DNA from: Macrostomum lignano
Taxonomy: Eukaryota
Reading direction: 5' to 3'
NCBI GenBank assembly: GCA_002269645.1
Contig: NIVC01002257.1
Location: forward strand, 124,001-188,000
Length of the DNA: 64,000 nucleotides
Position numbers and translations under genes: made by a program. Positions 58 through 64,000 of the stretch are shown here, one piece after another; positions within the stretch are counted from its first letter, which is position 1, and every line of letters starts with the position of its first letter. The notes under the pieces were generated by a model that saw only the letters and a program-made list of their open reading frames with translations, was not told the origin of the DNA and did not search any database.

Positions 58-1089
58 TTACATTACGATACATCTCCACCTGGCCGACAGCTGAGCTTGG
101 AGCTCTTGATGGCTTCGGAGCAGTTCATTCTGACGAGCTTCTGATTCTCGGAACTTTTCCTCTAGGTTGCGCATGTTTGACGACTGAACCTTGAAAGCTT
201 GGTACTGAGCTTCTAATCTTTCCTCCTTCTCCAGAACCCGGTGCCGTTCCTGGTACATGTCTATCATATCAGAAATGGCGTTAATCATGTCGTCGGAAAA
301 CTGGATTTTCTCCGTTGATGACTCATATACCCTATCGAGCTGACGCAGGTTAGCCGACAAACTATCGATGATTTTAAGCAGTCCGTCGGCCTTCCTGTCC
401 AACTCCTGAACGTCGAGGGTAGTTTTGATCCCCTTGGTAACAGATCCGATTCCAAGTCCTGTGCCAGCTGCTACTCCAGAAGCCAAGGCAGCTGCAGGAG
501 CCCATGTAGCACCCAAAGTGAAAAACCCAGCGATTCCAAGAGCCACGGACACACTGGCAGCAACTGCCATTCCGGCTGTTGCGCCATATCCTTTATTTTT
601 TCGGCTGGAAACCTCTAATTGGGCTTTCTTGTGCTCATCTTCCAGGTTACTTCGCAAATTTTCGGCGCTCTTGATAACTTCTTCAAGACAGGTGCGAAAA
701 CTTTGATATTCCTTTCCAAATTCGTTTGCTGAATCCAGTACTTCATGCAGCTTGTCAAGACAGTCCTTAACTTTCTTTGATGTCTTTTCATGGGTCGCCA
801 CAATTTCCCGTAGAGTTTTATTCATGCTTTTTCCACTACTTTCGAGATTTGAAGCAGCATCTTTGATGGCATCACATTGTGTACCCAAAGAAAGCAAACG
901 GTGCCGAAAATCTTCCAGTAACTCTACGCTTCGGACATCAATTTCGTCAGCGTTTTTAGCAACAGATCGTATGGTTTCAATATCAACTAAGAAAGTTCTG
1001 TTGATACTAATAATGTCATTGCTCAGTTTCAATGCTTCTAGCGTTTTTTTCGCATCAAAAATCAAATCGGACGCTTGAGGCGTGGCCAT
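58..1089 (-). CDS. 343-aa helical protein with Gly/Ala-rich hydrophobic hairpin, C-terminal coiled coil and CaaX box (family member A; APOL/alpha-PFT-like architecture)
   Basis: Uninterrupted ORF from ATG 1089, preceded by an acceptor-like ccatttcag. Contains GYGATAGMAVAASVSVALGIAGFFTLGATWAPAAALASGVAAGTGLGIG and ends RWRCIVM*. Aligns by eye with members B, C and D. Confidence 0.8.
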   Translation of the reverse strand: MATPQASDLIFDAKKTLEALKLSNDIISINRTFLVDIETIRSVAKNADEIDVRSVELLEDFRHRLLSLGTQCDAIKDAASNLESSGKSMNKTLREIVATHEKTSKKVKDCLDKLHEVLDSANEFGKEYQSFRTCLEEVIKSAENLRSNLEDEHKKAQLEVSSRKNKGYGATAGMAVAASVSVALGIAGFFTLGATWAPAAALASGVAAGTGLGIGSVTKGIKTTLDVQELDRKADGLLKIIDSLSANLRQLDRVYESSTEKIQFSDDMINAISDMIDMYQERHRVLEKEERLEAQYQAFKVQSSNMRNLEEKFRESEARQNELLRSHQELQAQLSARWRCIVM

Positions 1090-1263
1090 GGTTCTGAAAT
1101 GGTCAAGTTCAAGTTTAAAAGGTCGAAAAATTTACCTAAAAACGCAATAAAATGCTTTACCTTTTACGAGACGCGAAAACTTATTCTGAACTTATTTTTC
1201 ATGTACAAATTGTAGTTTTTTGATGCTTTTCCTTTCATGGTTTGGTCTGTTTTAGAGCGAGAA

Positions 1264-1318
1264 TTTATATAGGGCTCTCAGCTCATGCACTTCTAGACTT
1301 CTTGGCGAAGTTCCCTTT
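1264..1318 (-). promoter_or_regulatory. Putative promoter of member A: kappaB-like motif AAAGGGAACTTC (1318-1307) about 35 bp upstream of a TATATAAA box (1271-1264)
   Basis: Minus strand reads tgaaagggaacttcgcc...gccctatataaattc, about 180 bp upstream of ATG 1089. The same 12-mer recurs elsewhere in the window. Confidence 0.45.
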
Positions 1319-1322
1319 CATA

Positions 1323-2632
1323 CGAGGGTCACTCAGAAAGTTCTTAGCTTGAACACGAAAACAGCAACAAATGAACTAAAAAACGACTACAAGTGCTCAA
1401 AATACTCTCCACCGGCATTGATACAGGCTTGCATCCTGTGAAACCAGCTGTCGAAGCACTGCCGCCAATCCTCATCCCGGAGCTCCTCGATGATGTTTTT
1501 AAACTCATTCACAGCTTCTTCCGGTGAAGAAAAGACCTGGCCCTTCAGAATTTCCTTGCACTTCGGAAACAGAAAAAAGTCGCACGGTGCCAGGTCTGGA
1601 CTGTAAGCAGGGTGAGTCATCAGCTGGACCCCACAGTCAGCCAGAAACTCCAGAGTTTGAGCCGCCGTGTGCGCGCTGGCGTTGTCGTGGTGCAGAAGCA
1701 CCCCACGCATTCCGCACCTTGGGCGCCTCTGGCTCACAGCAGAAAAGACCTTGGGCAGGCAAACCGTTGTGTACCAGTCAGCGGTGACTGTCTGGCGATC
1801 TTCAAGTGAAACGGAAGCCACATGCCCAGTGCGCATGAAGAAACAGGCCACCATCTGCTTGCCGACACTCCGGCTGCGTCGAAACTTGGTGGGGCTGTCC
1901 TCGTCTCCAAAGGTCCACATGGCTGACTGGCGCTTGCTTTCGGGGTCGTATTGATAAATCCAGGTCTCATCGCCCGTGAGGATGTCCCAGATACGCCGGC
2001 TGGTCCCGGATTCGAATTTCTGCAGCATGAATCGGCACCAAGCCACCCTGGTGTCCTTCTGCACGTCCGACAGCTGATGGGGGATCCACCGGGAAGCCAG
2101 CTTCCGCACTCCAAGGTGTTCGTGCATAATGGCGTGCACACTCCCCGATCCAATACCGATCTCCTGCTGGATCTGCTGGTAGGTCACTCGCCGGTCAGCG
2201 GCAATCATGCTGGACACAGCGCAGATATTTTCTGGAGTCACTGCGTCACAGGGTCTCCCGGATCGATGTTCATCTTCGAGGCTTTCTCGACCTCGGCGAA
2301 ACTCAGCGAACCAGTTTTTGACGGTTGCGTATGAAGGACATACATGGGTGAAAACGTTCTGTAAAGTTTGATACGATTCGGCCGGCGACTTGCCTTGCTT
2401 GAAGTGCAGGTACATCATTGCTCTGAAGTCGCGATTTTCCAGCTTCATTGTTGAATTGAAGATCTCAGGGGGTGAACTGACTTTAACTCGCTGCAGTGGA
2501 CTCAAAAGTGGCTGCTTCTGTTTGAAATTTTTGCTGCGATACTTTTAAAAGTTGGTCTTTACCATAGACAAATTTCATGCTTCTACGTCTCGTGGATCCT
2601 ACTCAGGCTAAAGACTTTCTGAGTGACCCTCG
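1323..2632 (-). mobile_element. Full-length mariner (Tc1/mariner, DD34D) DNA transposon, 1310 bp
   Basis: About 30-bp TIRs cgagggtcactcagaaagt... at both ends, TA target duplication at 1321-1322 and 2633-2634, intact transposase ORF. Confidence 0.95.
1387..2448 (-). CDS. Mariner transposase (353 aa from first ATG)
   Basis: N-terminal HTH region, WIPHQL, TGDETW, LHHDNA, then HPAYSPDLAPCD with 34 residues between the second and third Asp. Confidence 0.93.
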   Translation of the reverse strand: MKLENRDFRAMMYLHFKQGKSPAESYQTLQNVFTHVCPSYATVKNWFAEFRRGRESLEDEHRSGRPCDAVTPENICAVSSMIAADRRVTYQQIQQEIGIGSGSVHAIMHEHLGVRKLASRWIPHQLSDVQKDTRVAWCRFMLQKFESGTSRRIWDILTGDETWIYQYDPESKRQSAMWTFGDEDSPTKFRRSRSVGKQMVACFFMRTGHVASVSLEDRQTVTADWYTTVCLPKVFSAVSQRRPRCGMRGVLLHHDNASAHTAAQTLEFLADCGVQLMTHPAYSPDLAPCDFFLFPKCKEILKGQVFSSPEEAVNEFKNIIEELRDEDWRQCFDSWFHRMQACINAGGEYFEHL

Positions 2633-3804
2633 TATGTACAGACTTAGTACAGACTACAGACAAAATTTAACTTTGTATCTCCATTGAGGCTTCTCGAAAT
2701 ATGAGCGGGAAACAATATTATAATAAACCAAAGTGCATATGGCTGTACGGCATTGTGAGACCAGCCAGATTTCATTACCTTAGCAAAGGAGAAGCAAAGT
2801 TTCTGATTGCTGGGTATGAACTTGCTCTCTATGCTTTCTGCCGCGTAGATTCGTAGCAGTTTTCTTTCCAACCATTTCTTGATTAGTTGTTTACTGTAGA
2901 GATGCCATTAAAATAAGGGACGAATAATAAATAGCATTGTACATTTGATAGATAAAGTTCTCTTTTCCGTATATATGCGGTGCACAATGGGGCACAATGC
3001 ACTGAAATATTAAGCAAACTACTGCTACAATTTACGTAGTGTCAAAAAACAGTGAAGACCGAATTTCAAAACATTTTTTCTACAGGTAGTGAGTGAGCGC
3101 TTTAAGGACGAGAATGGGTTAGCAATAAGCAATGATCAGTACCCAATCAATGATTAGCAACGGAAAAGACAGGATTTTGCAGCTCGTATAGATGATGCAA
3201 GCTATCAGTACATGTAGTAAAATCTACTCTTCACTGATCGTTGTCTACTAGTACTCATTATCTAAGACGAATTATATACTCAATGCTCAAACTTGTCACT
3301 TGGAAATATAAATAACGCGTGTAAGCCAGGTTCTCTCTGAGGCAGATTGATGCTGGTTCAAGAGAAGTCCTTGGTTCAAGAGTTGAAAATTCTATGATTG
3401 GGTACTCAGACGCTTGATATCCCAATTGCTACTCAATAGGGGAAAAACCTGCAACCATTTTGGTACCATTACTGAATTTCACACCCAAACAGTTTAGTGT
3501 ACGCTGTATACTGCTTGAGACAGGCTGCAAATACAAAAAGAAGGCAAAAAATGTGAAAAAACACTCTGCCTCATACGTAGTGTTTTCGTTGTCCTGGCCA
3601 TTACGAGCTATGCACTGTACGTAACCTATACGTACATGCAAATGCCCATCTATCTAACTACTGCTATGAGCATTGGCGAAAGACACTCGAGACAGGTGAG
3701 ACAGACAATAAAGACTTCGTACGATTCAGCTCTTAAAACTCGCTAGGGTAGGGCGTTGATAAACTTATTGTCACTGTACATCCAGTTAAATGATGCGCGT
3801 ACAT

Positions 3805-4835
3805 TGGACGAAGTTCCGTTTATTTTCGTACAGTTGATTTATGATTGTTTGTCTATCATAAATCATCCCTAGTGTCTTGCAATTGTGCCAACAACATTAA
3901 GTTCGATGATAAGTATAATGACGTTCTATATAACTGTCGTAAGTTAATATCTAGAGCCATTTTCGCTCATCGCTATACATTTTACAGACTTTTGCTCATG
4001 CTCGAATTTCCCTGCTTGAGGAAGTCTAGAAGAGTTTAATATTTGCAGAAGGCGCAACGCCTCCCACGACATCATTCCACAACCAGTGCCGAGGCAACCC
4101 TGCCCATTCCGCTGGCTCCTGAGCACATGCAGGCGCGCCAATACTGTAAGCAGGCACAGCACTCATGCACACGCTCACAAACTTTCTAATCGTCAAGCAT
4201 TTACACTCTCTGAGCCAAAACACCCTTAGTGCACTTTTCTTCTCCCATCTAACTTGGCACTACTGATGAATTTGCTGTGCTGTTGTGTCTCTCGGTTGTC
4301 TCTGTATATATTGGCATTTTTCTCTATCTCGCGGGGGTCTTCGAAGAATCGAAACTTTCGAGTTGACAACCTGCAGAAATTGAATACAGCGTATTTCAAC
4401 GTATACCTTACTGGATAAATTTAGGAAAAAAACTTAAGATATGCAGTAAAATTGAAGTGTATACTCGTATTTCTGCGAAACTCCTAAACTGCAGAAGCTC
4501 TGTACTGTTCTCTGGTGTGAGGTGGCTAGAGTAATCTGTTTACTCAAAATCGTACATTGGAGGAGACAAAAGGGAACTTCAAATTCGACTTGCTGTACAG
4601 AATACCAAGGAATGAGCTCTAATGTTGTACGGGGCTCATCTGTGCATCTCGGCTCTATCTTTTCTCAATCCGTTAAGCCTTCGAAGAATGCGTAGCTAAG
4701 CTAAAGGTGGCAATCTGCAGCAGTGGTTGAGAGAGCCCAGCCGCTGTACAATGGCTTTACTTTATTGGATGAGGTTACGCGTGAAACGCAGGTATAGAAG
4801 CTCGCAAAATATCTCTACCACATGAAGTTCCCTTT
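3805..4835. promoter_or_regulatory. Three copies of the recurrent motif GAAGTTCCCTTT (3810-3821 with one mismatch; 4569-4580 reverse; 4824-4835)
   Basis: Exact or near-exact matches to the 12-mer at 1307, 26429 and 26749. They lie in the divergent intergenic region between members A and B. Confidence 0.4.
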
Positions 4836-5258
4836 AACTGTGCGCAGTCCAAATTTGCATTAGGAGCAACAAGTACACTGAATTCAAGTACTCAAATATC
4901 ATCAAATGCAATCAAATGCAGATTAAGTAAGAAAATTCTCTCCATGACTGAGTCAGTGAACATAGTAAGTGTTCACCCAGTACAGGTAGCTAGATGAACC
5001 CCCTTTTCTGTACTCGGATTGCTTTTGGTAGGAATCACGCGCAAAAATTGGATTTTTGGCCTGGCGGGCCAGTCTCTATGCTTGTTAATACCCATTGACA
5101 CATTAACGCTTGAAAATTGAGCACTAGAGAAAGCACGAAAACATGGACCCCTATACTAGAAGTTACCATTGTACAACGATTTGTCTGTAGCCAAAACTCT
5201 ATATTACATGTAAAATAGTCTACGGTGGTGGGTGGGGCTTTGCCACCAAACCCCCGTC

Positions 5259-5427
5259 CAAGGAGTTCTATAATTGGCAATCTGGAGTGGAAGCGAGTTT
5301 TACCTCATGAGGCCACGCCAATTGTAGAGATAAGGAGCCAGCACTGAATGTCTATGCTAGTCTGGCCTCATGAGGTAAAACTGAAAAACTCGTTTTCACT
5401 TCAGGTTGCTAATTATAGAACTCCTTG
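5259..5427. mobile_element. 169-bp MITE, probably P-element superfamily
   Basis: About 57-bp imperfect TIRs starting CAAGGAGTTCTATAATT, 7-bp direct flank ccccgtc at 5252-5258 and 5428-5434. CANRG termini and 7-8-bp TSDs are typical of P elements. Confidence 0.75.
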
Positions 5428-6883
5428 CCCCGTCCCTCACTCTTAAAGTGTAGCTTAAAACAAATATCTTTGGTACAATGCAGCACAATATCGATGTAAA
5501 CTTTTGTTCATAGCTGGTATGCCGGTTTATTGGTAATTTATAGATTAAAAATTAATTGTAGTCCATAAACTGCAGCTTAAAATGGTACAAATTCTTAATT
5601 TTTTTCTGCCGCTACAAGCTTTGATGTCTACAGTTTCCACTCATAATATCATCGAAGAAAGTTAGCTAGTAAAGTTTGCAAAACACTGGAGAGAAAGTGT
5701 GCAATGGCTCGCGTCATTCTATCCCGGGCCAACAGTGTCAATGCCATAATGATGCAACCAGGGACTCAACCAGGCGATTCACTCAGTCCATGTTGCCGCT
5801 AAGTACGGGTGTCGCATCGGGCAGTCTGCTGTTTGGTCGCAAATCAATATCACTGTTCTGAGCCTTCAGCACTCGCGACCCCGCCATCAGCAATCAGGAT
5901 CGCCAGTCTGAGAGGATTTACGAGCTAAACGACATATTGAGACGGACAGACCACGTCATTCTGACAGCAATCACCACAATCACCATGAAAGACCGACGCA
6001 TTTGAAGAGTCGGCTCCGTAGACCATATTAGGGGTGGGGAGCACGTCCGAAGTGCATGGGGACTCGCTGGTCATGCATCGGGGACGGCACCAGACGCCAA
6101 GCGACTGCCCTAGACGTCAGAGCAGCTCAAAAGACAGCCAATGGCAGCCGAAGGACGGCAAAAAGAGCTACAAGGAGATGGTTAATTATTAAGGACTGAG
6201 CTGACAAACTGACGCTTCCATTATTGAAGTATTTTTCCCAGATTTTTACCTTCCTATTTTTAATTTTAAGGAAGACATTGTTAAATATTGTGCCACCGGC
6301 CATAGCCCATCGATGCATCAGTGAAATCTTTCTCCATAACGCACCATTATAAATCAATGTACATCCACTACTCATTTACAACATAACAATCTCCTGTAAG
6401 TCGGCTTAGCACCAAAATATGCTCTAAATTTCGAGGGCTATGCGCTAGCCAATTCTATTATTTCTGCTTCAAGCCAAACCTTCCTGGAAAAATGGGCATC
6501 AGCGCACAGCGCACCCTGTCTCCAATGCCGTCTTGGATAATTCCATAGGAAAATAAAAACAAACCAAATATCCACATCCTCGTTGAAGTGGAGAAAAAAC
6601 TATGAGTTTTATGCTATGAGCTATGAGAAGCTATGAGTAAGTGAATTTCGGACGAAAATTTCTAAGAACAAGTGCTGCACTCTCATTGGACAAGAACTTC
6701 ATGTAAAATAGTAAATACATGTAAACGGCGCGCACACAATGTCACATGAGTGTACGTACCTTTAACACTATAAATAATAAAGAACGGGAGTTCTACATAC
6801 GATCAAAATTAGCTCGAGATCCTACGCTAAAAGCAGACTTGTAGTATTTTTTGAGACAAAGAATAACAAACAGGATCAAAACA

Positions 6884-7276
6884 ATGTCGCAAAAAAAGAC
6901 AGGCGCAGCCACGAACGTTATGAACATGATGAGCAACCTAACGACAGCGACTGAAGCTGCTAGCAAAATAGCAAGCACTGCAAGTAGCATCTATGATACT
7001 GTATCAGCTGTCACACAACAATCGCACGATATTCTGACGGAATTGACCAAGGAAGCCGCCAGCATCGCCCAAGCCGAGGTCAGTGATTTTCGAGACGCAA
7101 TGCGAGACACAAATGCTTCTGGAGAAGATCTGAGGTCAAGATGTCTTGAGCTGAGAGAAAAGTGGCAGTCCTTTGAAAATTACATTTACGAGACCTTTGA
7201 ACGAAAGGAAATTAGTCGCGCTGAAGTTCAAAATTGCATTCAGCTGCTGCAGTTAATGCTGGAGAGTGCCGGCAAC
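6884..7276 (+). pseudogene. 5' half (131 codons) of family member B, interrupted by a Chapaev insertion
   Basis: ATG 6884 (TATAAAT near 6768). Reads ...IQLLQLMLESAGN into the element TIR and joins in frame to 10563 when the element is removed. Confidence 0.85.
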
Positions 7277-10200
7277 ACAGCACCCATGGAACATCTTTTA
7301 GGGAGAAAAAAAGTACGAAGCAATCCATTCAACTTTTCTTGTTCCATAGACACCTGTAGATGAAAAAAATGAAAAACAGAAAAAAATTTGCGATAGCTTC
7401 ATGTTTTATTGCACTTTTTGAATTTTCATGTACTTTTAATTGGCAAAACAGGAAGACATTCCATAAAAACTGCCATTTCAGCTTACAGGTCATTAGCGAA
7501 ATAAATTCAGCTACCTTTCTATCCCATACAGCCAAATAAATAACTAAAGACTTGTTTACATTGAAGCTAGTATCTCTGCGAGTCACACACTGTTCAAATT
7601 AAAGTACCACTAGTCTTGCACAAAGTCTAGATTGATTTGAGTATTCAATGATCTACAGAGTAACTAAACCTTTATTTCTGGCTCACATAATCGATAGCAT
7701 TTGATTGGCCAAATCGTTGTACACGCAGCTAAGCTGAATGAAATCAACCAATCGATTGCTTAACTTTAGGCGGCCAGTTTTTAACTTAACAGATGTACAT
7801 CCACCAGACATTTACAATGCTGCACTCGTCTGAAAATTTCATGCCCGCAAGCAGGCCAACTATAAGGTTCAATGAAAATGTACAATCATGCACTACAAAC
7901 TCAGTAAACATCTCACAGTGATAGAAAAATCCACTCTATCCTAGCATAAAACAACGCCAACAAACTTCAAATAAAGTTATATTCTATCATCAGTTTTATA
8001 GCACTTTTGATAGCTCTGCAATGCCTTCAACGGCTTTAACTCATTCGGAGAATCGATTGAAAGTATGCCTGATCTGCTTTAAAAAAGGAGCATCTCATGA
8101 ACCTATTCGTGACGCAAATCTACAACGCATCAATCGAAATTTTATCGAAGATATTGACATCACTGATGAAAGTCTTCCAGCATCTTTGTGCGCTCGGTGT
8201 CGCAAACTTCTTCTTGATGTCGACAGTGGTAGAAAGCCAGTGGATGCTCTGCCCCAACCATATGACTTCTCAAAAGTGAAGCAGACAGCAGTCACACGAC
8301 AGAATCCCCTGTGCCATTGTGATCTGTGTGAAGTCGCCCGGATGACTCCGATTGGTCAGGGGCTTGGCTCTGCCAAAGTTCCGGCTCACCCGATTGGCCG
8401 GCCGAAGAAATCCAACGACCAGCTGCCTGTAGCTTTGCCAGCTAAAATCTGCCGACGCTGCCTTTGCATCCTCCGGCGAGGAGTCAGTCACTGCTGTACC
8501 ATCACTCAACGCAGGGAAAACCTGTGCACAGAGTACTCTGTGGACCAGCGAGGGGCTGAGATGCACGCAGCCAAAGTAATCAAAAGAAAAGCTGTCGATG
8601 CGCACGGTGCTGCTCCAATTCAACTGGCAACTCGTGGGCGTAATCTAACACTCAGTCTCCTAGCCCCATCACAAGCTAAAAACTCGGCTGCTTTTTACGA
8701 TTCGCCGATCTCAGCATCTGAAATGAGCTGCTTTCAGCAGGCGCTGAGTCTAAGCAGACGGCAAACGAGGACTGCAGCGCAATTCTTCCGTAAGTGGAAA
8801 GGGCGGAAGTCAATTGAAGCAGGCCTGGAGTCGAAGTTGCAGCAGCTGGACAGCAGCCTCAGCGAGTATTTTTCGGTGACCGATGCAGAGTTTGAGATCA
8901 GCGGCGGTCAGAAGAAGCGCTGCTCCGTCGTATTCTGCAGGGACCCAGCAGGTCTCATTGATTACATGCTGCAACACCGGAGGGCGCCTTTTGGTTCTGA
9001 GTTCGTTGCAAAAGTTGGAATGGACAGTGGTGGTGATTTTCTGAAAATCTGTCTCAGCCTCATAGTTGACACATCAACTGATGCAAGTGACTTCGAGACT
9101 CAGGCTGCCGATGTCTGCTCAAGCCACTTTGCCGAAGGAGGTGTCAAGAGACTCATGCTACTAGGAATTGTTCAAGGAGTGAAAGAAACGTATGCCAACC
9201 TTAAGACCATGCTGGATCTTTTGAATATGAAAGGCGTCCGATATTACTGCTCGATGGACATGAAGATGGCCAACATCTTCCTTGGGCTTCAGGCATGCAG
9301 CAGCTTGCATCCGTGTCCTTGGTGCGAGTGCAGGCGGAACCTTTTTGGTGATGCGCATCGTGACATCCAGCTGCGGACGCTCGGTGCCATTCGAAGAAAT
9401 GCAGCCCAGTATCAGCAGGCAGCTCGGCAGCATCGGGGCAGTTTGCAGCTTGGAGCTGCCAACTTCAAGAATTGTGTGCATGATCCACTAACAGATCTGC
9501 CTGACGACACCGAGGTTCTAACGATCGTGCCTCCAATGGAACTGCACCTGATGCTGGGAATTACCAACCGGCTGCTGGAAGAACTGGACACGCGACTCCA
9601 AGCGACAAATGACTGTTCGGTGCGCATTGATGACTGGCTTGCTCGACTGGGAGTTCAGCGACAGCCTCAGCATGGCAGGCAGATAAACGGCAATGACTGC
9701 GCAAAGGTGCTGGAGTCAGTAGATCAGTTGGAGCAGATGGTCCGAGACTGCGATGCTTGCCTGGGAATGCCCGTTGTGTTTGCTCTGCGGTGCTTTCGAG
9801 AGGTAAAGAGAACCTGCTTCAGCCTTGAACTGCGCGATGGCTTCGAGACCGCCGTGGCTCACTTTGCTCAGGCTTACGCGGATCTCGGTATTAGCACCAC
9901 GCCGAAGGTGCACGCGCTGATTGACCACGTGGTGCCTTTCCTCTCAAGCGCTGACAACAGGGAAGCCCGACATGGACTAGGCTTTTGGTCTGAGCAAGCT
10001 GGCGAAGCTGTGCATCGCGATTTCAACAGCCTGTGGTGCCGCAGCTACAAAGTTAGTCCTACAAATCCTCAGTATGCACAACAGCTGCTGAAGTGCACTG
10101 TTGCGTACTGCTCGCGGCATTTGTGACCTGCTTTAATAGTAAGAACATTTTCTTTTTCTAAGTCTTTTTTTGTTTGCAATAGCAGATAGAAAAAATGTGT

Positions 10201-10557
10201 CTTTAAGCTATCTATAATATTTGTTTATGGTAAAAACTTATTTAAAAAACACTATTTAAAGTAGCCTAATGCACTGCATATAAGTTTTTTTATCGGCCTG
10301 ATAGTTTAAGTTAAGCAGGTAGCTGAATTTAATACGCTGATGACCTGCAAGCTGAAATGGCAGTTTTTATGGAATGTCTTCCTGTTTTGCCAATTAAAAG
10401 TACATGAAAATTCAAAAGGTGCAATAAAACATGAAGCTATCGCAAATTTTTTTCTGTTTTTCATTTTTTTCATCTACAGGTGTCTATGGAACAAGAAAAG
10501 TTGAATGGATTGCTTCGTACTTTTTTTCTCCCTAAAAGATGTTCCATGGGTGCTGTG
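7276..10557 (+). mobile_element. Intact Chapaev-type (CMC superfamily) DNA transposon, about 3.28 kb
   Basis: 241-bp TIRs (7276-7516 and 10317-10557) starting CACAGCACCCATGG. 4-bp TSD gcaa (7272-7275, 10558-10561), equally readable as 6-bp ggcaac. One long transposase ORF. Confidence 0.88.
8021..10126 (+). CDS. 701-aa Chapaev/Transib/RAG1-related DDE transposase
   Basis: N-terminal H-x7-C-x2-C...LPASLCARC...CHCDLC zinc motif. Core KVGMDSGG (D), SMDMKMANIFLGLQACSSLHPCPWC (D plus CxxC), ELHLMLG, KVHALIDH, SEQAGEAVH (E). Confidence 0.88.
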   Translation: MPSTALTHSENRLKVCLICFKKGASHEPIRDANLQRINRNFIEDIDITDESLPASLCARCRKLLLDVDSGRKPVDALPQPYDFSKVKQTAVTRQNPLCHCDLCEVARMTPIGQGLGSAKVPAHPIGRPKKSNDQLPVALPAKICRRCLCILRRGVSHCCTITQRRENLCTEYSVDQRGAEMHAAKVIKRKAVDAHGAAPIQLATRGRNLTLSLLAPSQAKNSAAFYDSPISASEMSCFQQALSLSRRQTRTAAQFFRKWKGRKSIEAGLESKLQQLDSSLSEYFSVTDAEFEISGGQKKRCSVVFCRDPAGLIDYMLQHRRAPFGSEFVAKVGMDSGGDFLKICLSLIVDTSTDASDFETQAADVCSSHFAEGGVKRLMLLGIVQGVKETYANLKTMLDLLNMKGVRYYCSMDMKMANIFLGLQACSSLHPCPWCECRRNLFGDAHRDIQLRTLGAIRRNAAQYQQAARQHRGSLQLGAANFKNCVHDPLTDLPDDTEVLTIVPPMELHLMLGITNRLLEELDTRLQATNDCSVRIDDWLARLGVQRQPQHGRQINGNDCAKVLESVDQLEQMVRDCDACLGMPVVFALRCFREVKRTCFSLELRDGFETAVAHFAQAYADLGISTTPKVHALIDHVVPFLSSADNREARHGLGFWSEQAGEAVHRDFNSLWCRSYKVSPTNPQYAQQLLKCTVAYCSRHL

Positions 10558-10562
10558 GCAAC

Positions 10563-11240
10563 TGTGGCAAGTGCTACAAAGAGTTCAGAGAGAAACTGAA
10601 TCGTGCTGTTGACGTAGGGTCTCGCCTCGCAGAGCGGTGCAGAGTCGCAGCCGCGGAAAGCAGGTCCGAAGCCTCGACCACGAAGGCTCGCGGATATGGC
10701 GCTGCAGGAGTTCTAGGCGCTGCCGCTCTTGGCTTTCTCACCTTTGCTACAGGAGGCGTCGCTGCGGTTGGAGCTGCTGCAATGGGTGCAGCCGCGGCTG
10801 GCGCGGGAGCCTACACCTACGATAAGGCGAAAAAACTGGAAAAACTGGCTGGTGAGTTTGACGACCAAAGAGGAAAGCTTGATGATGCTCTGCGGGATCT
10901 GAACAGCTTGGGAGATTCCATCACTGGTCTGTTTACCGTCACCGAGAAAATGGTCGAGAACATGGAGATTGCCCTGAGGATCTTCAAGGAGCAGGAACGC
11001 CTGAAGCAAGAGAACGAGGACAATCGAATCAAGAATGAGAAGATGGCTCTGGAAAACGAAAAAATGAAGGAGGAACAGGAAACTCTAAAGCAGGAGGCGG
11101 AAAGAAGGAAGCAAGAAAATGATGAGATGAAGCAACAACAAGAAAGCATGAGACAGAGAAATGAAGAATTGGAAGAGCGGCTCAAGAAGCTGGAAATCGA
11201 AAAAAATAAGAAAAAAAGCAAGGCTTGCCGCAACATGTGA
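10563..11240 (+). pseudogene. 3' half of family member B: hydrophobic hairpin, coiled coil, polybasic tail plus CRNM
   Basis: CGKCYKEFREKL...GYGAAGVLGAAALGFLTFATGGVAAVG...KKNKKKSKACRNM*. The reconstituted empty site gives a 356-aa ORF. Confidence 0.85.
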
Positions 11241-16039: not shown

Positions 16040-19000
16040 TTACTGAGAGACAGTTTTGAAGATTTTATTTAGACTCTCCAGAGCTTTCTCCAGAGTGACT
16101 TCCTTCCACGCATCCGGTATTCTGGCGTACTCCTTTGAGGTTTCCATCAGAGAGTCTCGATATTTCCAGGCGATCCATTTCCAGTAGTCTGGCACTGGTG
16201 CCCAGAAAGTTGGCTCGATGTCCCAGTCCGGAAAGCATTTTTTGTATTCACAGCAATGGTGCAATTTTCTTTCCTTTCTCCCAGTACCAGCTACTGCAGC
16301 CTCCTGATCACCTTCTTCTGTAGTAGATAAATCAACCTCGGCGGAACATTTATGACACTTAAAATTTTTGTTCCTGAGACCTGGAAACAATTTTGCGATA
16401 CGGCTCTGGCTAATTCCTGTGGAAAAGTAGCCACAAGCGTACGGTGCGAACTCATGTCGAGACTCAAGCTTTTCTCCAGTCAGGCCCATTGGTCTGTGCC
16501 CAATACAGCGGTGCTTGCATGAAGCTTTGTCTTCGGTAACATGGTCAGCTTCCATCCGAATGCAGGGCTCATTGCAGAGCGGGCAGCAGTGATCACAGCC
16601 CCAGAAGTAGCTTATCGCGTCTTGATAAGCCTTCTTCATACCTGGGATATTATCATAGTCTTGTCTGCCCTCTACAGTTTTTTCACAAAAGGACTCAATC
16701 AACTCAAAAGCTTTTTTGTCAGTAAATGATTCTAAAAATTCTTTCAAATCCACTTCTGAGTTTTGCAGTAGGCTTGCATCAAGCAGTTCAATTGACAAGG
16801 GGAATTCAAACTCATTGCAAATGTCGCAGAACACTTTCAGCCATTCTGTCACTGATGTATTATCATTCTTGGCTTTATTGGCTGCAGTAAAAGCATTTTG
16901 AATGGTGTTTCTTGACGGCTCAAAAAATTCAGCATCAATAATCAATATATAGAGCGAATCGTGTCCGTTTTTGTCAAAAAGCACCTCTTGTACTTGCATT
17001 TTCAAAAAATCAGCTGCTGCTTGTTTCGGAGAGAGAATGTAAGAACAAAGGAGTTGCTTACCATCGCTCTCCATCCCATACACAAGCAACTTCTTTATCA
17101 ATGCTGCTTTGTTACCTATGGATGCCTGTAAGTGCTCGAGACACTTACCTGGAATTTTGTCGATAGTTTCTTCAAATGATCGCGTTAGCACTTTCTTCAG
17201 CGCGTCAAGAACATCATCAGCAGCCATGATTGAATGTCGCAACTTTGACACATGGCCTTTGAAGATTTTTAGCAATTGTTCTTTCTCTTTTTCAAGCTTT
17301 GACTTTAGACTGAATCGCTCTGCAAACCGGGTTTCCATTTGTTTGAACGTGGGGTATGCCAAACGACATGCGTACACTACCACAGCTTCTTTTAATTTAT
17401 TCGTGAGAACGATTTGCCCTGACAATCGGCCTGAAGTTTTTTCAAACTCGCAGCAAACTGTTTTAACCACTTTTTCCGCATCCGATTTCCAGAAGGATCT
17501 GTTCTTCTCTGAAAGATCTCTGAGAATTGGACCAATCGAAGACAATATGCATTTAACAGCATCCAAAACGACATTTTGGTACTTGCTATGTCCTCTGTCA
17601 ATAAGACCCCTAACTAGACCTTTGACCTGATAGAGCTCATCAGTGCTACTATGGGGCATGACTTCAGATAGATTTGTTAGTTTCTCAGGCTCAGAAGGTT
17701 TCAGTGTGATTTTGGCAGTCCAAGAGCAATCTTGATTGAACTGCAAAGCTTCCATTGCACAATTCCTCACAATTTTTTCAATGGGCTCTGAAGGGACTGC
17801 TGAATCCTCACTAATGGTCAATGCCTCAGTGGTCCAAAACTTGTCAAAGTGTTTCTGAATCTGTTCGTCAGAAAGTAGCTGGCTTTGATTTGTCATATTT
17901 AGCTCATCTGCACTTTCCTTTAATTTCTTCTTTACTGTCTCGATCTTCGCATTCTGATTTATTCTGACATTTTGTACCTTCACAAACTCCCTCAAGCGGT
18001 CGGAGAGTTCTTCATCTAATGCCTCTTTTTTAGTTACAAGAGCACTCATTCGATCACAGTGGTGTTGACTGATATACTGCTTGCGCTTACTTTCTTCAAA
18101 GTATTTGTCGAGCTTTTTCTCAGCCTCCTTAAAAGCTGACTGTATCGCTTTGGGCATTTCATCACGAATTTCCTTTTCGCTACGATCTAAATCTTTTTGA
18201 GAATGAATATTCGACTCTCGTGATGTGACACGCTTTCTTGAAAATTCGTAGACTTCCTTTTCAAACTCGAAGGCTATCTTCTTAAATTCGACTTCAAGTT
18301 TATCGAAAGCCTTCCTTTCAATGCTATTTCGATAGCTAAATACAAAGTTTTGGGTTAGAACGGCGTTCCAAATGTCTTCAATTCGGCAGGCAAAGTCTTC
18401 AAAAGAGAGAAGCGGTACATGAGGATCTCTCGATAACTGAATAAGATGTTGCTTTAAAGCCTGAACTTTTTCTGAATATACTGTGTTCACAGGATCAGCA
18501 GGTGGGTTGCCAAGCCATACACCAGGCAACAGAAATACGTCGGATTCAGGTGAAAACGAAATAATATCACAAAAGCTTTTTTCTCCGAGACCTGCATTGC
18601 CTGATTCAGTCTTAGTGAATTCGTCAAGTTTCTCCTGCCTTGCAGCAATACCACTCTGCAGTTTATGAGCTGCTGTTGCTTCACCCACATGCTGATGCGT
18701 GAAGATGCAATGTCTTTTTAAGTTTAACTCTTTGTTGACTTGCATCATCTGAATAAACGCTTTGATGACAATCGGTAAGACATTTCGCATCTCAGGGGAG
18801 TCCTCTCCGTTCACCGTAATTAGAGTGACGTCTGCCAATCCAATCACTAGTGTGGCGAATTCGCTATCTCGGAAGTTATCTGAACTTTCTTCAACAGACA
18901 TAATGCCTTCAGTGTCAATGACAGCAAGGTAGTCAAACGGAAGCTTTGAGCTCTGATGTGCGTGCACAAGCTGTGAGCTGTGAGCGTGCACAAGCTGCAG

Positions 19001-21599
19001 AAAAGCTCCTCGAGTGCAGCGACCTGCACTCACTGGGAGTCTCATGCCAAACATTGTGTTCAGCAGAGTGGACTTTCCTGAGCTTTGAACTCCGAGAACT
19101 GACACGACAAATATCTTTTTGTCACCAGCTTGCCGCTTGCACTCGAGCAAGACAGCTGAAATCCATTTCATGGGAATGTTTCCGAGAGTTCCATCTAACA
19201 GTTCAATGGGCATTCCTGACAGCAATAGGGACGCGAATATGCCTGGCAGGCGTTGAATCTGATGCGGCATTTTTGTCTCACTGATCTGAGCATAGGATTC
19301 AAATAAAAGGCCAACTTCTCTAAGTAGGCAATTCAAATCAATCGATGCTTCAAAATAAGCCTTCTTTGCTTTTTCTACATATTCTTCCAGACGTTTTTTC
19401 TTATTAAAATCGCTATCAGGGCACCTTTTTAGTTCTTTCTCCGCTTCTAAGAGCTTTTCGTTTTGATTGAATGAGTGCTCATCCAGCGCAAATTTTAGTG
19501 AAAACAAACTTATTTTGACAAACACTGCTTTTGTTCTGTGGAGCTCGTGCAGTTGCGTCACAAAATTGGCTAAGAAAGTACCATTGGTTTCATAGGCGGT
19601 TACTTGGGATTGGTACAGCTTCTGCTGAGCTGTCAAAACTGACTCAGGATCTTTTCCACTGGTAATTAGCTTTGCCATTAATTTGAAGTAACGAAAAACT
19701 TTCTTTCCGTCTGTATGCGCATGCGATTCAGCTAAAGATTGAAGTGCAAGGATATTTTTACGTCCAAATTTTCCACTCATCACGTAGCTAAATACTTCTC
19801 TTGCGGAATTCATCACAAAGTCAGGAAAATCTTTAAGCTTTACGGCGTCCTGAACTCTTGGCATTTGCTGAAAATCGCCTGCAGGTGAACGAATTTTGTC
19901 CAGAGCGGAATGAACAGTTGAGCAGATTTCTGCAACGGAGGGAGAGTTATTCAATAAAAACTCTGTCTTCAAATGTAGATCTTCGTACCTTTGAAAAGCG
20001 TCTCTGTTTTCCACTTCTTTTAATGACTCGAGGACAAAAAGCAGAACTTTTTTTGCTTTGTGGTGAAGTGTCTCCACAAATTGGACGGTTTCGGGTTTAG
20101 AAAATTCGTCTAAATAGCCAAACAAGACACAGCACTGTGACAGCTTTGCCATTTTTTCTGTCTGCGCATTGTGTTTTTTGGCATCTCCTCGCAAGTTTAA
20201 CACCAAGTATGGTGTTGCTTTGTGGTGCTTGTCACCCACAGGTTTTTTAAACCAAACAGCCGCTTCCACTAGTCCACTTGAACAGATCCGCAATGCCTTT
20301 CCGTTTGTGCACTCTCGGTGGAAGAATACATGCATATCGAGTGTTTCGGAGCTCAACAGTTTGCTTAAAATCTGAGACTTCGAAACTTTTAAGTCTCCAG
20401 TTCTTAGGAAGGATATTACTGGAAGTTGCTTGTTGTTGCTTGTGCTTGTGCTTGTGTCATCAACAACAGGTGCTTGTTGTTGAGGAGCTAAACTGTCTGT
20501 GATTGATTGCTTCTCGATTTGCATTGCAAAAGCAGATCCAAGACAAATTCGTTTCAGCTCTTTATCAAAACCTTCAAATTCCAAAGCGATATCGCCCAGA
20601 ATCCAGTCACTCTGAACGAGCTCGTTGAACTCATTCGCGTAAAGAAATGGAAAAGCCAGCTTGCATTGGAACAGCCGCTGGCACAGAAACTGTTTCACTT
20701 CCGCATCACAGCACAAGAAACTGGCAAAGAGTACATCGACTGGATGCAACTGTTTAGCATTGCTTTTCTGGGCATGAGCAAAGGAACTTGTTTTCTGCAA
20801 CGTTATCCAGGACACTTTTTCTTTTTCTTTTGGTCGGATCGCATCATGCACTTCTGTCGAACCGCCGATTGTATTTCGAGCTCTTAAGTCGAAAACAGCC
20901 AAAGAGCTCAGCATTCTCAAAGCTGGAGATACTGCAGGTCGGCCGTCAGTGCACCTGATCTCCGTGATTTTGCTAATGCAAATTTTATCAAATACATATT
21001 CCAGCAATCCTGCCTCTTTGAATACTTGTACGAGATCTTCTCGAATCGGTAGCAAGGCAGGACTCAGTTTTAACAGAGCTGCAAAAATATCGAATAATTC
21101 GAAATCTAAACTGCACCAGTCCGGTAATTCCTTCATAGACTGGTGAAATTGATGCAAATTTTGCAGACCTCGAATTGACTTTTCAAATTTTTCATGGTCG
21201 TTGATGGTCAACTTCAGTTTTTTTAGAATTTCTACGAGTCGTTTGAGCAGCTCGATTTTGCTCTTTGTGTCGCGGCCGGAAAGCAACTCCAATAGAATTG
21301 CTTCTACATCTTCTATACATCCAAGATACTTGACTTCGTTGAGGTACTGAAAAAAGAACTGCCTGAGGGCTTCCTTTGTTTTCTCATTGTCTGTAGTAGG
21401 GAGAATCTGTGATGTAGCAACTTCAGCGTCAACGCTAAGAAGATCCTGGTCTTCTGTTAGCTTCAGTTTGTCTATTATAGTACTGCTCCATTGGTCCACT
21501 GGCTCCAGCCCCTCTCCATCCTCTTCATGCTGCTGGTTGAAGCATTCCAGTGTCTGCTCGATTTCTTTTTTGCCAGACACGGAAACTGTGGAAGAAGCC
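16040..21599 (-). CDS. GVIN1: Main coding exon of a GVIN1/VLIG-like very large GTPase (about 1853 aa)
   Basis: G1 VLGVQSSGKSTLLNTMFG, G2 GRCTRGAF, G3 IDTEG, FTHQHV. URGCP/VLIG motif HPVDVLFASFLCCD...LFQCKLAFPF, C-terminal CPLCNEPC...HRP, GVIN1-like N-terminus. Acceptor ttttctgtatttcag ends at 21600. Confidence 0.9.
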
Positions 21600-22182
21600 C
21601 TGAAATACAGAAAACACATCCTCATGTTAGACATCGAGTTGTACATGAACAGTAGAAAGACCATGGGGGTGGGTGTATTTCAAATACACACATTTTCCCT
21701 TTGTCTGGATCTCCAAAAATATTCAACCAGTTGCCATGAAAATCCAGATCACTAGCTAAAATTTTCCGCTCTATTCGATGAAGCAACTTCAAAAATCACG
21801 GAAAATCGGCACCGTCGAGATATTCAACAATTCTCCTCATGGTGCCTGGTGGCAAAAACCACCAAAATTGGCAAGATTTTTCTGCTCACGAAATCTCATC
21901 ATGAAACCACGTCGGCTCAACAAATTTTGCATATCAGTCGCAGCGACATTTGCTCTCAGCATCCCAGGCACCAGGGTCCCCTTCATCACCGTCTGGAGCA
22001 TCGGCGGCGACCGTCAAGACCTTCAACAAAAGCATCCGATCGGCATCTCAGAGACGGCTGCGTTCCCAAAACTGAAATGGAAGAATCCTCTTTCTTCTGC
22101 ATGCAGCATTCAGTCAGTAGACATAATCAGTGAATGAAATGGACAATGGCGACCCTCTAGGCTGACCTGTAGACATACAGGC

Positions 22183-25601: not shown

Positions 25602-25799
25602 CTGTAAGAGAGAGAAGAATGGATTGATATTCATAGGAAAGATAAATTGTTTGGAGTAGTACGTGTACAATACATCATTGTCTAATAGCGGTAGTGCCTT
25701 TGGAAGTGGTTCTAGTGTCGAGTTGTGAGTTATTGTGTAACTAAAGAGCTATTATTCCAAGTAGCTTTGCTGCAGCAGCAGCAGTAGGAAGTATTAGTT

Positions 25800-26288
<489 letters not shown>

Positions 26289-26772: not shown

Positions 26773-27061
26773 GGCTGGGTGTACATTAGAAAACAAAACA
26801 AATGAGATTCCACATCGTTTTACTCTCATAAGCTCTTACATTGAATACGAGTATTTTACTCTGAATAGATTAGTTATGCGACGTAAGGACGAGAATCACG
26901 AAATCGAATTCTTTAGACATTAAAAGTACATGTACATGTAGAGCATATGCTACTTCTAAGGTAAATGTGAATAAAAAAATTAAAAACAAATAATAAAATC
27001 CTCGAACAATGGACAAAAATGGACAAAAACAATGCCTTAAATATGCATAAAAAGTCAGGTA

Positions 27062-27308
27062 GGTGAGTTCGACGGCATAGGAGGAGAACTCGACAATGCT
27101 CTGGATAGTCTGAGCGATTCGGTGATATACATGTACAGTCGCCGGTTTATTCACGGTCGCCGAAAGTATGGTTAAGAATATGGAGATCGCGATGAAGTTC
27201 GTCAAGGAGAACGATAGGCCGAGAGAGGAGCAGGAAAGCCTGCGAAAAAGAAATGGATAGGAGCTAGAAAGACATCGTGCTTCTGGCGATGCAGCTCCCA
27301 AGAAGTAG
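27062..27308 (+). pseudogene. Pseudogene fragment of the hairpin/coiled-coil family (member D)
   Basis: GEFDGIGGELDNAL../frameshift/..VAGLFTVAESMVKNMEIAMKFVKEND matches member B GEFDDQRGKLDDAL...ITGLFTVTEKMVENMEIALRIFKEQE. Contains an internal stop. Confidence 0.8.
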
Positions 27309-33172: not shown

Positions 33173-33329
33173 GTGAGAGTTGCTTATTTGCTACTTGTTA
33201 GTAGGCTAGCATTTCTTGATAGGGTAACTTGATTCATGGATCTTGATGTAGCATACTTGGAGAATCCGCCTCCCCTTCCTTTGGGGGGGGGGGTATAACC
33301 CCCAAAAAGATTTTAAGATGGAAAATTCC

Positions 33330-60966: not shown

Positions 60967-62788
60967 ACATGGAGTCTCGTGTTGGTTGACTAAAGTATGG
61001 AGTGCATGTAATTTCCTCCATGGACTAAAGTCGCATTTAGATTGTCAAAAGCGATACTAAAGCATCACAAGCTGGAATATAGAACTGATGATTATTGCGC
61101 TCCTTTACATGCTTTCAGCCTCTTACGGTATGCTAAAACACAGAAAAGTTTATTTTACGAGCTACGAAAGCACGTGCTAACTAAACAAAATTAACGTAAA
61201 CAAATCTGAACGAATATGATTCATTGTACGAGTACAAACCAGGAAAAATGCGCTAAAGTGAAAGGCACAAATGGGAGGAGAGAAATTCCTTATTTGGAAA
61301 TTTGTTATGAAATGAAGGGCACAGGAGAGTTGCAAATTTTAGCTTAACAAATTCAGACGATAACAGCTATAGCAAAATTTTATTGCATGCTGCTGATGCG
61401 ATATCTTTCCATGGTTGTGATATACAAGCACCATGTGTTTTATAACTCTACGTAGCAACTACTACAATACAAAAGTAGCAGAATTACGCCCTTAACAGTA
61501 CGACAATTTATTCTATCATCTTGTCGAACTTTTTGCTGCACCAGAACGGAACAACGCATGCAGACCCTTTCCCCCGCCAAAACAGCAAGCATTAATAGAT
61601 TATGCCAGAATGATGCGGAATGCAATTTTTCTTTAGCAATACAGGCATTTGGATTTTACGTCTATGCGCTCTACTGCTAGTAGAAGCACGAATCGATTTT
61701 CTTTTATTTCTCAACTGTCTCTCAATCCCTCAATCAGTCCATGAATTCAGTTAGCCAGATCTGCATTCTAGTTGTACACCAGGTAGCAAGCGGTGAATTT
61801 CTTAATACAAGCTACAATGATTTTAATGCAACGTCTATTGTTCTGTACCGTTATAGGCAGCGCAGTGTTTGGCGACACACACAAAAAATCGGTTTAGAAA
61901 ATCATTCGGAGACATCTCCGTGTATCTGAGTTTCTTCAATTAGGCGGGCGCGGGGCGCCATGGGCGCCGCCGATCTCTGTGTGTCCTCAATCTCTAAGGC
62001 GAGGGGCCCGCATATTCCATATATATATAGATATAAATATAGCCGCATGCTCCCAGTCTTTGAAATCGGAGATTCACAATTGAACCTGCATGCTGCGCCA
62101 CGGTCGGGTTGCTCTTTGGTAGATCGAAAGATCGCCGACTTAAAGACCTCTCGGAGGGGAGCCCGCATGTGGGAGGTGGGGTGGACAGGATTCGATAGAA
62201 AAAATCGGTGAACAGCATCATGGGGTATTAAGCTGGCATGCATCGAAAAACACAAACTGTTGCCTTGATGAAATAGCCGCTATAATGTGCCGCAAGCAAC
62301 CCACCCCCCGCGGTGCGCCACTGCCGCCTCGTTTGAGTTGCTTCTTCGTTCGCGCCACCCGCTGTCGGCCTTCCCCAATTTCGTTTCTTCCCAGATTTTA
62401 ATCGGGGATCTTAGTCTTAAGCTCATTAAACCCGAGCCGGTGCACTGACAGTTTAACAAATTTATCATTGGAAGACTGAAGAAGCTTTATTTTAGCGAAA
62501 TCTTTTAAGAACCAAAGCGTGGAGATTTAGTGAATTGGGCGGACGTGCATCTCTTTTTGTTATTATTGTATAGTTACGGTTGCTATGCCAACGGTACTTC
62601 CATCTATATTTCCAACTGGGAGCAGGCATGAGGGGAGAATTATTACAAAACTATGAATTGCGGTAGAAAAATTGTTTGCAAAGCAAAAACTAACTTAACA
62701 CACAGGGCGCACACGCATGAGGTGCATAAAAATCACACTATACATACTCGCAGTACACTCTGGCGTTTGTTTTTCCCCATTATTTCAG

Positions 62789-64000
62789 GCAGACACAAAA
62801 CGCTTGTGCAGATTGGCCAGCAAAGGCGAACACGAAGCTATGGGAAATTTGCTCCGAAACAAGCCGTCAATTGTAAGCAGCAAATACCCGCTTTACTCAG
62901 ACCGCAGCGCTCTGCTGTGCGCCGCAGCAGCTTCAAAGCGCCACTACTCCCAGGGCGGTGAGGATCACACGAAATGTGCTGAAATCCTAGTCAGGTTTGG
63001 AGCTGATCTGAACGGCCAAGACTCCAAGTCTAACACGGTCCTGCACCTCTCAGTGAAGTCCAAAAATGATTCTTTGCTCAAGTTTCTACTTGGAAAAGAT
63101 GTCAGAGTTGCTGACAAACGGAATAGTGACAGCAGCACTCCGCTTATGCTTGCCGCCGAATTCGACTACGAACAGCACGCGGAACTCCTGCTTGAGCACG
63201 GTGCGAGAACTGGCTCTGTAGACGAATTGTTTTATCACGCAGCAAAAGAGATTGCAGAATCTGAAGGAAGCGAACGGGTGCTTGAAGTCATGCGCAACTT
63301 TGACCAAAGGCAAAGGGAAAAAGAGAAAGTGAGGGACAGAGAATATTTTTGCGGAGCACAAGTACCTCGATTTGAAAATATTTTTGCTGGCATTCAAGGA
63401 TGCATTCATCAGATCACACATGAAGCAAATACAATTCGAAACAGCGTAAGCCATGCAGTGCAAGAAAGCTATGAAATCTATATGGAAATGCCAGCATATT
63501 TCGACCACAATGCACAGCCACTTCGGAATGTTTTGACAGAAGCAGAAAGGCTGGGAAATGTGTTTCACGAGAAGTGCGAACGCTTGTCACAGCGGTGGGC
63601 ACCAGTGGAACAGAAGGTGCTGCAATTGCTCGGACGTCCGCAATTAATCAACAAGACCGATGTACTGAAGTCTATCAGTGACCTGAGAGAATGCATTCAA
63701 TCGGCCGATGAGTGCAAACACAGCCTCTCACAACTGAAAGAAAAACTGTCAGACGCCGCTCGCCTCAGTCGAGAACTGGCGGAAAAGTGTCGAAAGGAAA
63801 GCAGTGATGTTAACAAGCGGAGAGAGGAAAGGAATCAGGAGATCAGGAATCAGGAATCAGGAACCAGGAATCAGGAGAGAGGAATCTGGAAACAGGCATT
63901 AATTGCCGGCGCAGTTGGTGGAGCTGTAGGAGGCCCTTTAGGATTAATTGCTGGGCTGTGGTTAGGATCTGAAGATGCTGCTACGAGTGCTACGAGTGTG
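62789..64000 (+). CDS. Member C, exon 3 (runs off the window): about 4 ankyrin repeats, helical domain and Gly-zipper hairpin
   Basis: Acceptor ttccccattatttcag and 404 open codons, hand-translated: ADTKRLCRLASKG...NTVLHLSV...TPLMLAA...CIQSADECKHSLSQLKEKLSDAARLSRELAEKCR...ALIAGAVGGAVGGPLGLIAGLWLG. Confidence 0.85.

Follow-up and report, generated by a model that had tools for sequence, protein, structure and literature searches.

The proteins of the APOL family (PF05461; human APOL1-6, mouse APOL7C) include the channel-forming APOL1, APOL3, which dissolves the membranes of bacteria, and APOL7C, which ruptures phagosomes. Most APOLs are cytosolic and carry no signal peptide; they are built on a helix-hairpin-helix core with a Gly/Ala/Ser-rich helical hairpin of about 50 amino acids (aa), an F-T-x-G turn, and a C-terminal coiled coil or leucine-zipper-like helix, and their genes form multi-copy, rapidly evolving clusters. 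Human APOL3 acts with prenylated GBP1 to kill bacteria in the cytosol. The prenylated GBPs are cytosolic defence proteins that dock on pathogen or vacuole membranes by a CaaX lipid, aided in GBP1 by a polybasic patch, and the CaaX boxes of human GBP1, GBP2 and GBP5 are CTIS, CNIL and CVLL. The literature we searched treats APOLs as vertebrate, interferon-linked proteins, and their membrane targeting is still debated. Here we describe three related gene copies, designated A, B and C, in positions 124,001 to 188,000 of contig NIVC01002257.1 (a stretch of 64,000 nucleotides, referred to as the window and numbered from its first letter). In our reading, to which we assign a probability of roughly 60%, A, B and C belong to a divergent and hitherto unnamed APOL-superfamily branch and encode lipid-tailed, membrane-directed proteins, for which cell-autonomous defence is the most likely role.

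A first-pass annotation of the window had described A and B as helical proteins with a membrane-inserting hairpin and a prenylated C-terminus. Both elements lie where it had placed them, and their parts are as follows.

58..1089, minus strand: copy A, an intact single-exon open reading frame (ORF) beginning with ATG, 343 aa, ending ARWRCIVM, with termini that align with full-length homologs
436..591, minus strand: hairpin of A, residues 167-218 = GYGATAGMAVAASVSVALGIAGFFTLGATWAPAAALASGVAAGTGLGIGSVT, with turn motif FFTLG
61..72, minus strand: CaaX box of A, CIVM, followed by the stop codon at 58-60
6884..7276, plus strand: 5' part of copy B, residues 1-131, stopping at the first copy of a target-site duplication
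10563..11240, plus strand: 3' part of copy B, residues 132-356, with the hairpin, a putative E/K-rich coiled coil, the polybasic stretch KNKKKSKA and CRNM
10692-10820, plus strand: hairpin of B, residues 175-217, uncharged and Gly/Ala-rich, 43 aa
11226-11237, plus strand: CRNM, the C-terminal end of B

In copy A, a helical N-domain is followed by a single hydrophobic hairpin, then by a long C-terminal helix and the CIVM terminus. Its hairpin is an uncharged, Gly/Ala-rich stretch of 52 aa (mean Kyte-Doolittle hydropathy 1.25; 67% G/A/S/T; 18 small-xxx-small pairs). Heptad counts on the sequences gave hydrophobic fractions at a/d positions of 0.57 versus 0.27 in A and 0.50 versus 0.15 in B. The two copies are 22-25% identical (22% and E=0.003 by composition-corrected BLASTP; E=7e-17 over 279 aa by uncorrected tblastn). 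This likeness, weak when taken alone, goes beyond chance because they are collinear and both match the same outside homologs.

Searched exhaustively with A by phmmer, a set of 1.84 billion representative proteins yielded eight matches, comprising three Macrostomum lignano hypothetical proteins, three proteins of other assemblies and two ApoL proteins. A profile search added P0009, which brings the outside homologs to nine, seven of them family members; the family members that carry names are annotated as hypothetical proteins. An alignment of A, B and six relatives runs from end to end, with invariant F131, G167, T191, G193, T223 and R284 (A numbering). Copy B groups with P0005 and with a module of P0004 (31-32% identity over about 300 aa, E ~1e-30), and paralogs in the family are 22-31% identical. 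P0004 (MetaClust UPI0007A1A69D) is a 1171-aa model that joins an aminotransferase class I/II domain, a complete family module ending in CAIL and repeat-derived sequence; it is probably a mis-merged prediction, and the family module alone was used in comparisons. No Pfam family covers A, B or the other family members, in line with the unnamed family proposed in the first-pass annotation. The matches of A, B and the family profile in Pfam, PHROGs and PDB sequences were sub-threshold, fell in assorted helical and two-transmembrane families, and were rejected as compositional. Word-indexed database searches with A, with the full alignment, and with the alignment minus hairpin and coiled coil returned either nothing or P0008 and P0009 only, and metagenome contigs searched with the B subfamily gave no relatives.

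The homology to APOL is carried mainly by P0002, a metagenome-assembly protein whose gene lacks introns and lies on a eukaryotic contig. The phmmer search with A retrieved P0002 at E=3e-7 (its own match to PF05461 is E=1e-19, 71 bits) and P0006, a sheep APOL3-like protein, at E=2e-5 (PF05461 E=4e-110, 368 bits). Since the aligned stretches include the compositionally biased hairpin, shuffle and flank controls were run. A hidden Markov model (HMM) of the family scored P0002 at 54.2 bits, against -1.4 +/- 6.9 bits (maximum 16.1) for 300 shuffles in which the flanks and the hairpin of P0002 were shuffled separately, a z-score of about 8. The 50-residue pre-hairpin flank of P0002 alone scored 13.6 bits (p ~2e-6), and a motif Y-Q-S-F-x-T-x-L ahead of the hairpin is common to both proteins (EYQSFRTCL in A, GYQSFKTRL in P0002). 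Comparison of the family and ApoL profiles with hhalign gave 95.4% probability and E=1.9e-8 over 159 columns, with the FT.G turn and the flanking helices in register. This turn reads GFFTLG in A, FATGG in B, FFTGG or LLTGG in the other homologs and APFTAG in ApoL proteins, its T and G being invariant in the family alignment. By BLASTP, A and P0002 are 30% identical over 166 aa (E=1e-10), which is comparable to P0002 and sheep APOL (30% over 150 aa, E=5e-9). The P0002 score relative to its shuffles, the flank-only match, hhalign and BLASTP together indicate that the family is very probably a divergent branch of the APOL superfamily, and the likeness to APOL remarked on in the first-pass annotation is thus best read as homology rather than as mere appearance.

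Four members of the family end in a Cys at position -4, namely A (CIVM), B (CRNM), P0005 (CSVL) and the P0004 module (CAIL). In a CaaX box, an X residue of M, S, Q or A specifies farnesyltransferase and L or F specifies geranylgeranyltransferase I, with Met indicating a farnesyltransferase substrate. Aliphatic a1 and a2 residues with an X residue suited to one of these enzymes are present in A (I, V, M), P0005 (S, V, L) and the P0004 module (A, I, L). The CIVM of A resembles the Ras boxes CVIM, CIIM and CVVM, and A is likely farnesylated, judging by this motif. Within the B subfamily (B, P0005 and the P0004 module, the latter two 30-31% identical to B) the Cys is invariant at -4 despite 18 extra residues just upstream in B; a Cys that keeps this position while tail length varies is the mark of a functional CaaX box. 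In P0005 and the P0004 module an additional Cys lies two positions ahead of the CaaX Cys (CVC...), as is usual where prenylation is combined with palmitoylation. The charge pattern of the B tail, KNKKKSKA-CRNM, is that of a K-Ras4B-type signal, although Asn at a2 makes B a non-canonical substrate, and A has only two upstream Arg. Neither A nor B has an N-terminal hydrophobic signal-like stretch by hydropathy and inspection, which is consistent with a cytosolic protein whose C-terminus is open to prenyltransferases. The branches of the Macrostomum hypothetical proteins, P0008 and P0009 have no Cys-x-x-M/L tail, so lipidation would be a feature of a subset of the family. Of the tail claims made in the first-pass annotation, the canonical box of A holds and is joined by a Cys kept across species in the subfamily of B, and the atypical box of B behind a polybasic tail is as described; the label of a prenylated family would apply to the Cxx[ML] subset, A included, and does not extend to most members.

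Full-text literature searches (APOL with CaaX, prenylation, invertebrates or Macrostomum) gave no account of CaaX-bearing or invertebrate APOL-like proteins. Human APOL3 may itself end with a Cys at -4. The first-pass annotation had stated that no APOL member with a CaaX tail was known, which may be too strong: in a 2025 prenylome of Th1 cells, human APOL3 was captured by farnesyl-azide and its labelling was lost under FTI-277 (PMC12315405). APOL3 is placed there among proteins "not known to be prenylated", without further discussion, and the text names no motif (PMC12315405).

Several observations weigh against an APOL-type, lipid-tailed family and are best considered together. The Pfam ApoL model (PF05461) is not matched by A, B or six homologs, even at E<=10, with P0002 and P0006 passing as positive controls. 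Scored directly, sheep APOL reaches 17 bits with the family HMM and its best shuffle 20 bits; the APOL link is therefore transitive, through the single intermediate P0002. The outside homologs recovered are few, the nine given above with seven of them being family members. A second hydrophobic helix follows the hairpin in P0006 (258-281, ...GIFIGLDVYSLVK) and P0002 (300-331) in hydropathy profiles and is absent by the same measure from A, B, P0001, P0005, P0008 and the P0004 module, where a long helix with heptad character takes its place, so the mechanism may differ from that of APOL. The CaaX box is missing from six of the ten complete family members aligned, and the CRNM of B is a poor one, with Arg at a1 and, at a2, Asn, which makes a poor farnesyltransferase substrate. 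Lastly, the hairpin is left unmodelled by AlphaFold2, at a predicted local distance difference test (pLDDT) score of about 30. The silence of Pfam ApoL and the sheep APOL score inside the shuffle range, along with weak Pfam matches to many two-transmembrane hairpin families (SLATT_1, Holin-X, FUSC), also speak for the alternative that the likeness is convergent and that these are unrelated coiled-coil proteins whose Gly/Ala-rich hairpin draws compositionally biased matches. We regard such convergence as improbable, given that the pre-hairpin flank matches P0002 by itself, that the segment-wise shuffles leave a z-score of about 8, that hhalign places the turn and both flanking helices in register, and that the domain order is identical to that of APOL.

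The structure predicted for A was also compared with known folds. AlphaFold2, run from an 11-sequence alignment, gave a model with a mean pLDDT of 67.3 and a predicted template modelling (pTM) score of 0.50; a single-sequence model (pLDDT 59.7) was discarded. The model is all-helical (helices 5-22, 31-47, 55-99, 104-166, 215-260 and 266-342; pLDDT 70-93 outside the hairpin), and residues 266-342 form a single long helix within that range of pLDDT. Copy A is clearly neither a plain coiled coil nor an ordinary transmembrane protein. The elongated helical bundles of ClyA, Hbl, Nhe and AhlC likewise hide a hydrophobic hairpin, and ClyA monomers were the top Foldseek matches in the PDB (4pho and 1qoy; E=2e-3 to 2e-2, probability up to 0.98), with AhlC also among the matches. 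These could be taken to mean that the family consists of ClyA/Hbl-type alpha-pore-forming toxins, perhaps secreted, venom-like or of bacterial derivation, rather than APOL-type proteins. However, no match reached E<=1e-3, template modelling scores were 0.23-0.34 with a root-mean-square deviation of about 15 A, and the query model had a pTM of 0.50 and left the hairpin unmodelled. Sequence comparison gave no support either, as the family profile matched Hbl B in the PDB at E=0.52 with ClyA unlisted, and the Pfam families HBL and HlyE were not matched. The toxins compared are moreover bacterial, secreted and unlipidated, whereas A and B lack a signal-like N-terminal stretch, a CaaX box works in the cytosol only, and both the gene context and the homologs are eukaryotic. 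A toxin of this type is therefore very improbable, and the connection to ClyA and Hbl drawn in the first-pass annotation is weak: the Foldseek matches are marginal and not significant (E of at least 2e-3, template modelling score about 0.3) and there is no sequence signal. The solved N-terminal domains of APOL1 and APOL2 (7l6k, 7lf7, 7lf8) were absent from the matches of both the family profile and Foldseek.

The APOL-like copies in the window differ greatly in their state of preservation. A scan of the six-frame translation of the window with the family HMM matched A, the two halves of B, a third copy C and one fragment, and nothing else. The additional elements are the following.

7277..10556, plus strand: DNA transposon splitting B, with 241-nt terminal inverted repeats (TIRs), a target-site duplication and an intact 701-aa ORF at 8021-10126
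62699..64000, plus strand: copy C, a single open frame running past the window end, first ATG at 62717, with ankyrin repeats followed by the family N-domain
27047..27254, plus strand: B-like pseudogene fragment, post-hairpin helices only, with an internal frameshift and stop

Excision of 7277-10562, which joins 6884-7276 to 10563-11240, restores a single uninterrupted ORF of 356 aa in B. Across the junction it reads ...IQLLQLMLESAGN/CGKCYKEFR... (LESAGN/CGKCYKEFR, the slash marking the junction), and its terminus is KNKKKSKACRNM. The reconstitution proposed in the first-pass annotation is thereby confirmed, down to the peptides it quoted. The transposon is 3.3 kb in size, its TIRs (7276-7516 and 10317-10557) are 98% complementary, and the target-site duplication GGCAAC is found at 7271-7276 and 10557-10562. 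The insertion appears to be recent, because B is otherwise without defect and the TIRs are nearly identical. The 701-aa ORF of the transposon carries N-terminal Cys-rich motifs; it had no match in Pfam or the PDB, and a superfamily assignment was not obtained.

Copy C has the family N-domain from about 63410, followed by the start of the hairpin (GIWKQALIAGAVGGAVGGPLGLIAGLWLG), and is related to B at E=5e-11 (tblastn). Its ankyrin repeats (Pfam Ank_2, E=1e-17) are in frame with the family domain. The fragment lies in two frames, 27047-27139 and then 27135-27254, which correspond by tblastn to B residues 223-256 and 250-289 at 38-50% identity. In the scan it was recovered at 27126-27257 (E=0.003) by an HMM built without it. 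The 64 kb of the window thus contain four copies, of which two are broken: an intact A, a transposon-split B, one fragment and one ankyrin fusion. This is the tally and the birth-and-death picture that the first-pass annotation had given, and the cluster evolves by duplication, fusion and loss, with fast turnover of copy number. The window reads as eukaryotic, with a Mos1/mariner-type transposase ORF, piggyBac-like fragments, satellite arrays and an exon-split DEAD-box helicase gene, and it has no DNA in common with the contigs bearing homologs.

Between the APOL-like copies lies an intact, single-exon ORF of 1874 aa (16040-21664, minus strand) that encodes a very large GTPase of the URGCP/VLIG type (PF25683 E=3e-88; PF25496 E=2e-33; P-loop GVQSSGKSTLLNTMFG). 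Vertebrate relatives of these GTPases, the GVIN proteins, are interferon-induced, and the gene may mark an immune gene neighbourhood. From the homology to APOL, the rapid duplication, fusion and loss in the cluster, and this neighbour, we infer that the proteins are most likely cytosolic, membrane-directed effectors of cell-autonomous defence, and the lipidation, membrane attack and immune role set out below belong to that inference.

In the mechanism we propose, the proteins would be made in the cytosol, as the lack of a signal-like N-terminal stretch suggests, as a helical N-domain, a Gly/Ala-rich hairpin whose F-T-x-G turn is homologous to the P-F-T-x-G of APOL, a further helix and a long coiled coil. 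The hairpin would be held shielded inside a soluble helical bundle. A would be farnesylated at Cys340, and geranylgeranylation, probably along with palmitoylation of the adjacent Cys, would be expected of the relatives that end in CSVL and CAIL. The lipid would make a first, reversible contact with a membrane from the cytosolic side, assisted in B by the polybasic stretch, and so supply the contact that canonical APOLs get from their membrane-addressing helix. The hairpin would then insert and the coiled coil drive oligomerisation, and the outcome would be a permeabilised or remodelled target membrane, in the manner of APOL1, APOL3 or APOL7C. In copy C, the ankyrin repeats may give targeting or auto-inhibition.

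The main rival to a role in defence is a housekeeping one, in which the proteins are true APOL relatives that organise membranes or lipids, the CaaX box merely fixing them on endomembranes. They might be hairpin proteins of the endoplasmic reticulum (ER), Golgi or lipid droplets, or regulators of lipid kinases or of membrane fission, roles that have been suggested for the intracellular APOL2, APOL3 and APOL6. Such a role draws on the identical homology evidence, and a hairpin with a lipid anchor would suit a constitutive monotopic membrane protein. CaaX proteins without a second signal usually stay on the ER and Golgi, and A has neither a polybasic nor a palmitoylation signal of this kind. The Macrostomum relative, moreover, is a single intronless gene between a kinase gene and a leucine-rich repeat gene, and the 10 kb to each side contain no further copy. 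On the other hand, an intact copy, a transposon-split copy, a fragment and a fusion within 64 kb would be rare for housekeeping genes, paralog divergence is extreme at 22-31% identity, and the neighbour is a URGCP/VLIG GTPase. We therefore consider the housekeeping role unlikely and defence the most likely function.

Compared with APOLs, the family shares homology across the helix-hairpin-helix core, the turn, a putative C-terminal coiled coil, the multi-copy clusters and a probable cytosolic character. It differs in falling below the Pfam threshold, in having no counterpart of the membrane-addressing helix (the second hydrophobic one, of GxFxxLDVxxLV type), in the canonical CaaX end of A, the Cxx[ML] ends of the B subfamily and the one ankyrin-fused copy, and in its occurrence in invertebrates, including the flatworm Macrostomum lignano. 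The prenylated GBPs offer the logic proposed here for A and B, but they are non-homologous dynamin-like GTPases without a membrane hairpin, whereas here the lipid would sit on the membrane-damaging module itself. A more specific version, in which an ancient, unrecognised invertebrate APOL branch replaced the membrane-addressing helix with a prenyl anchor, with or without palmitoyl or polybasic support, and could be attached to ankyrin recognition domains, is tentative and less likely than not.

These comparisons define a family missed by current Pfam models. An invertebrate branch that kept the core, dropped the membrane-addressing helix and gained a canonical lipidation signal would amount to a natural experiment, one that asks which APOL parts are needed for insertion, how an intracellular pore-former is aimed from the cytosol, and how old this arm of cell-autonomous immunity is. 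The CaaX-bearing branch is also a reason to take the single proteomic report of human APOL3 farnesylation seriously (PMC12315405). If the more specific version given above is true, one polypeptide would unite roles that in vertebrates are divided among prenylated GBPs and APOL3, and APOL-type cell-autonomous immunity would date back to early bilaterians.

The remaining features of the window are described here for completeness. Adjoining copy A is an uninterrupted Mos1/mariner-type transposase ORF of 372 aa (1387-2505, minus strand; HTH_48 E=6e-12, Transposase_1, DDE_3). A match between the 5' part of B and the C-terminus of the GTPase ORF (E=0.037) was discarded, as the matching portion of the query was partly read-through of a transposon TIR. 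An ORF at 39083-40150 resembles B through its E/K-rich composition only and has neither a hairpin nor a family HMM match; it was rejected as a member. Upstream of copy C, a stand-alone ankyrin ORF of 226 aa (58305-58985, plus strand) is a collinear paralog of the ankyrin part of C (33% identity, E=1e-9). Retroelement-like ORF fragments lie just downstream of it (59274-60873), and on account of these the ORF may be a remnant of another fusion gene of ankyrin repeats and an APOL-like domain.

A DEAD-box helicase gene (32580-36244, plus strand) is split into three or more exons (DEAD E=1e-24, Helicase_C E=1e-19); its introns contain 25-bp tandem repeats, and its C-terminal exon is long and of low complexity. 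A pair of paralogous ORFs, each of about 245 aa (43744-44493 and 46391-47128, both plus strand), are 40% identical over 121 aa (E=2e-13) and contain several hydrophobic segments; they had no significant family assignment, with a weak match to MCLC only. An Rfam scan of the window gave no match. Inverted 151-bp repeats (22182-22600 and 23974-24256) flank piggyBac-like (DDE_Tnp_1_7) fragments. Repetitive DNA includes a 31-bp satellite at 42814-43721 (29 copies) and a trinucleotide repeat at 25790-26288 (166 copies) that yields a poly-Thr ORF. A 40-bp satellite at 53084-53986 (21.6 copies, 97% identity) is open in three frames and so gives rise to spurious ORFs of 313-354 aa.

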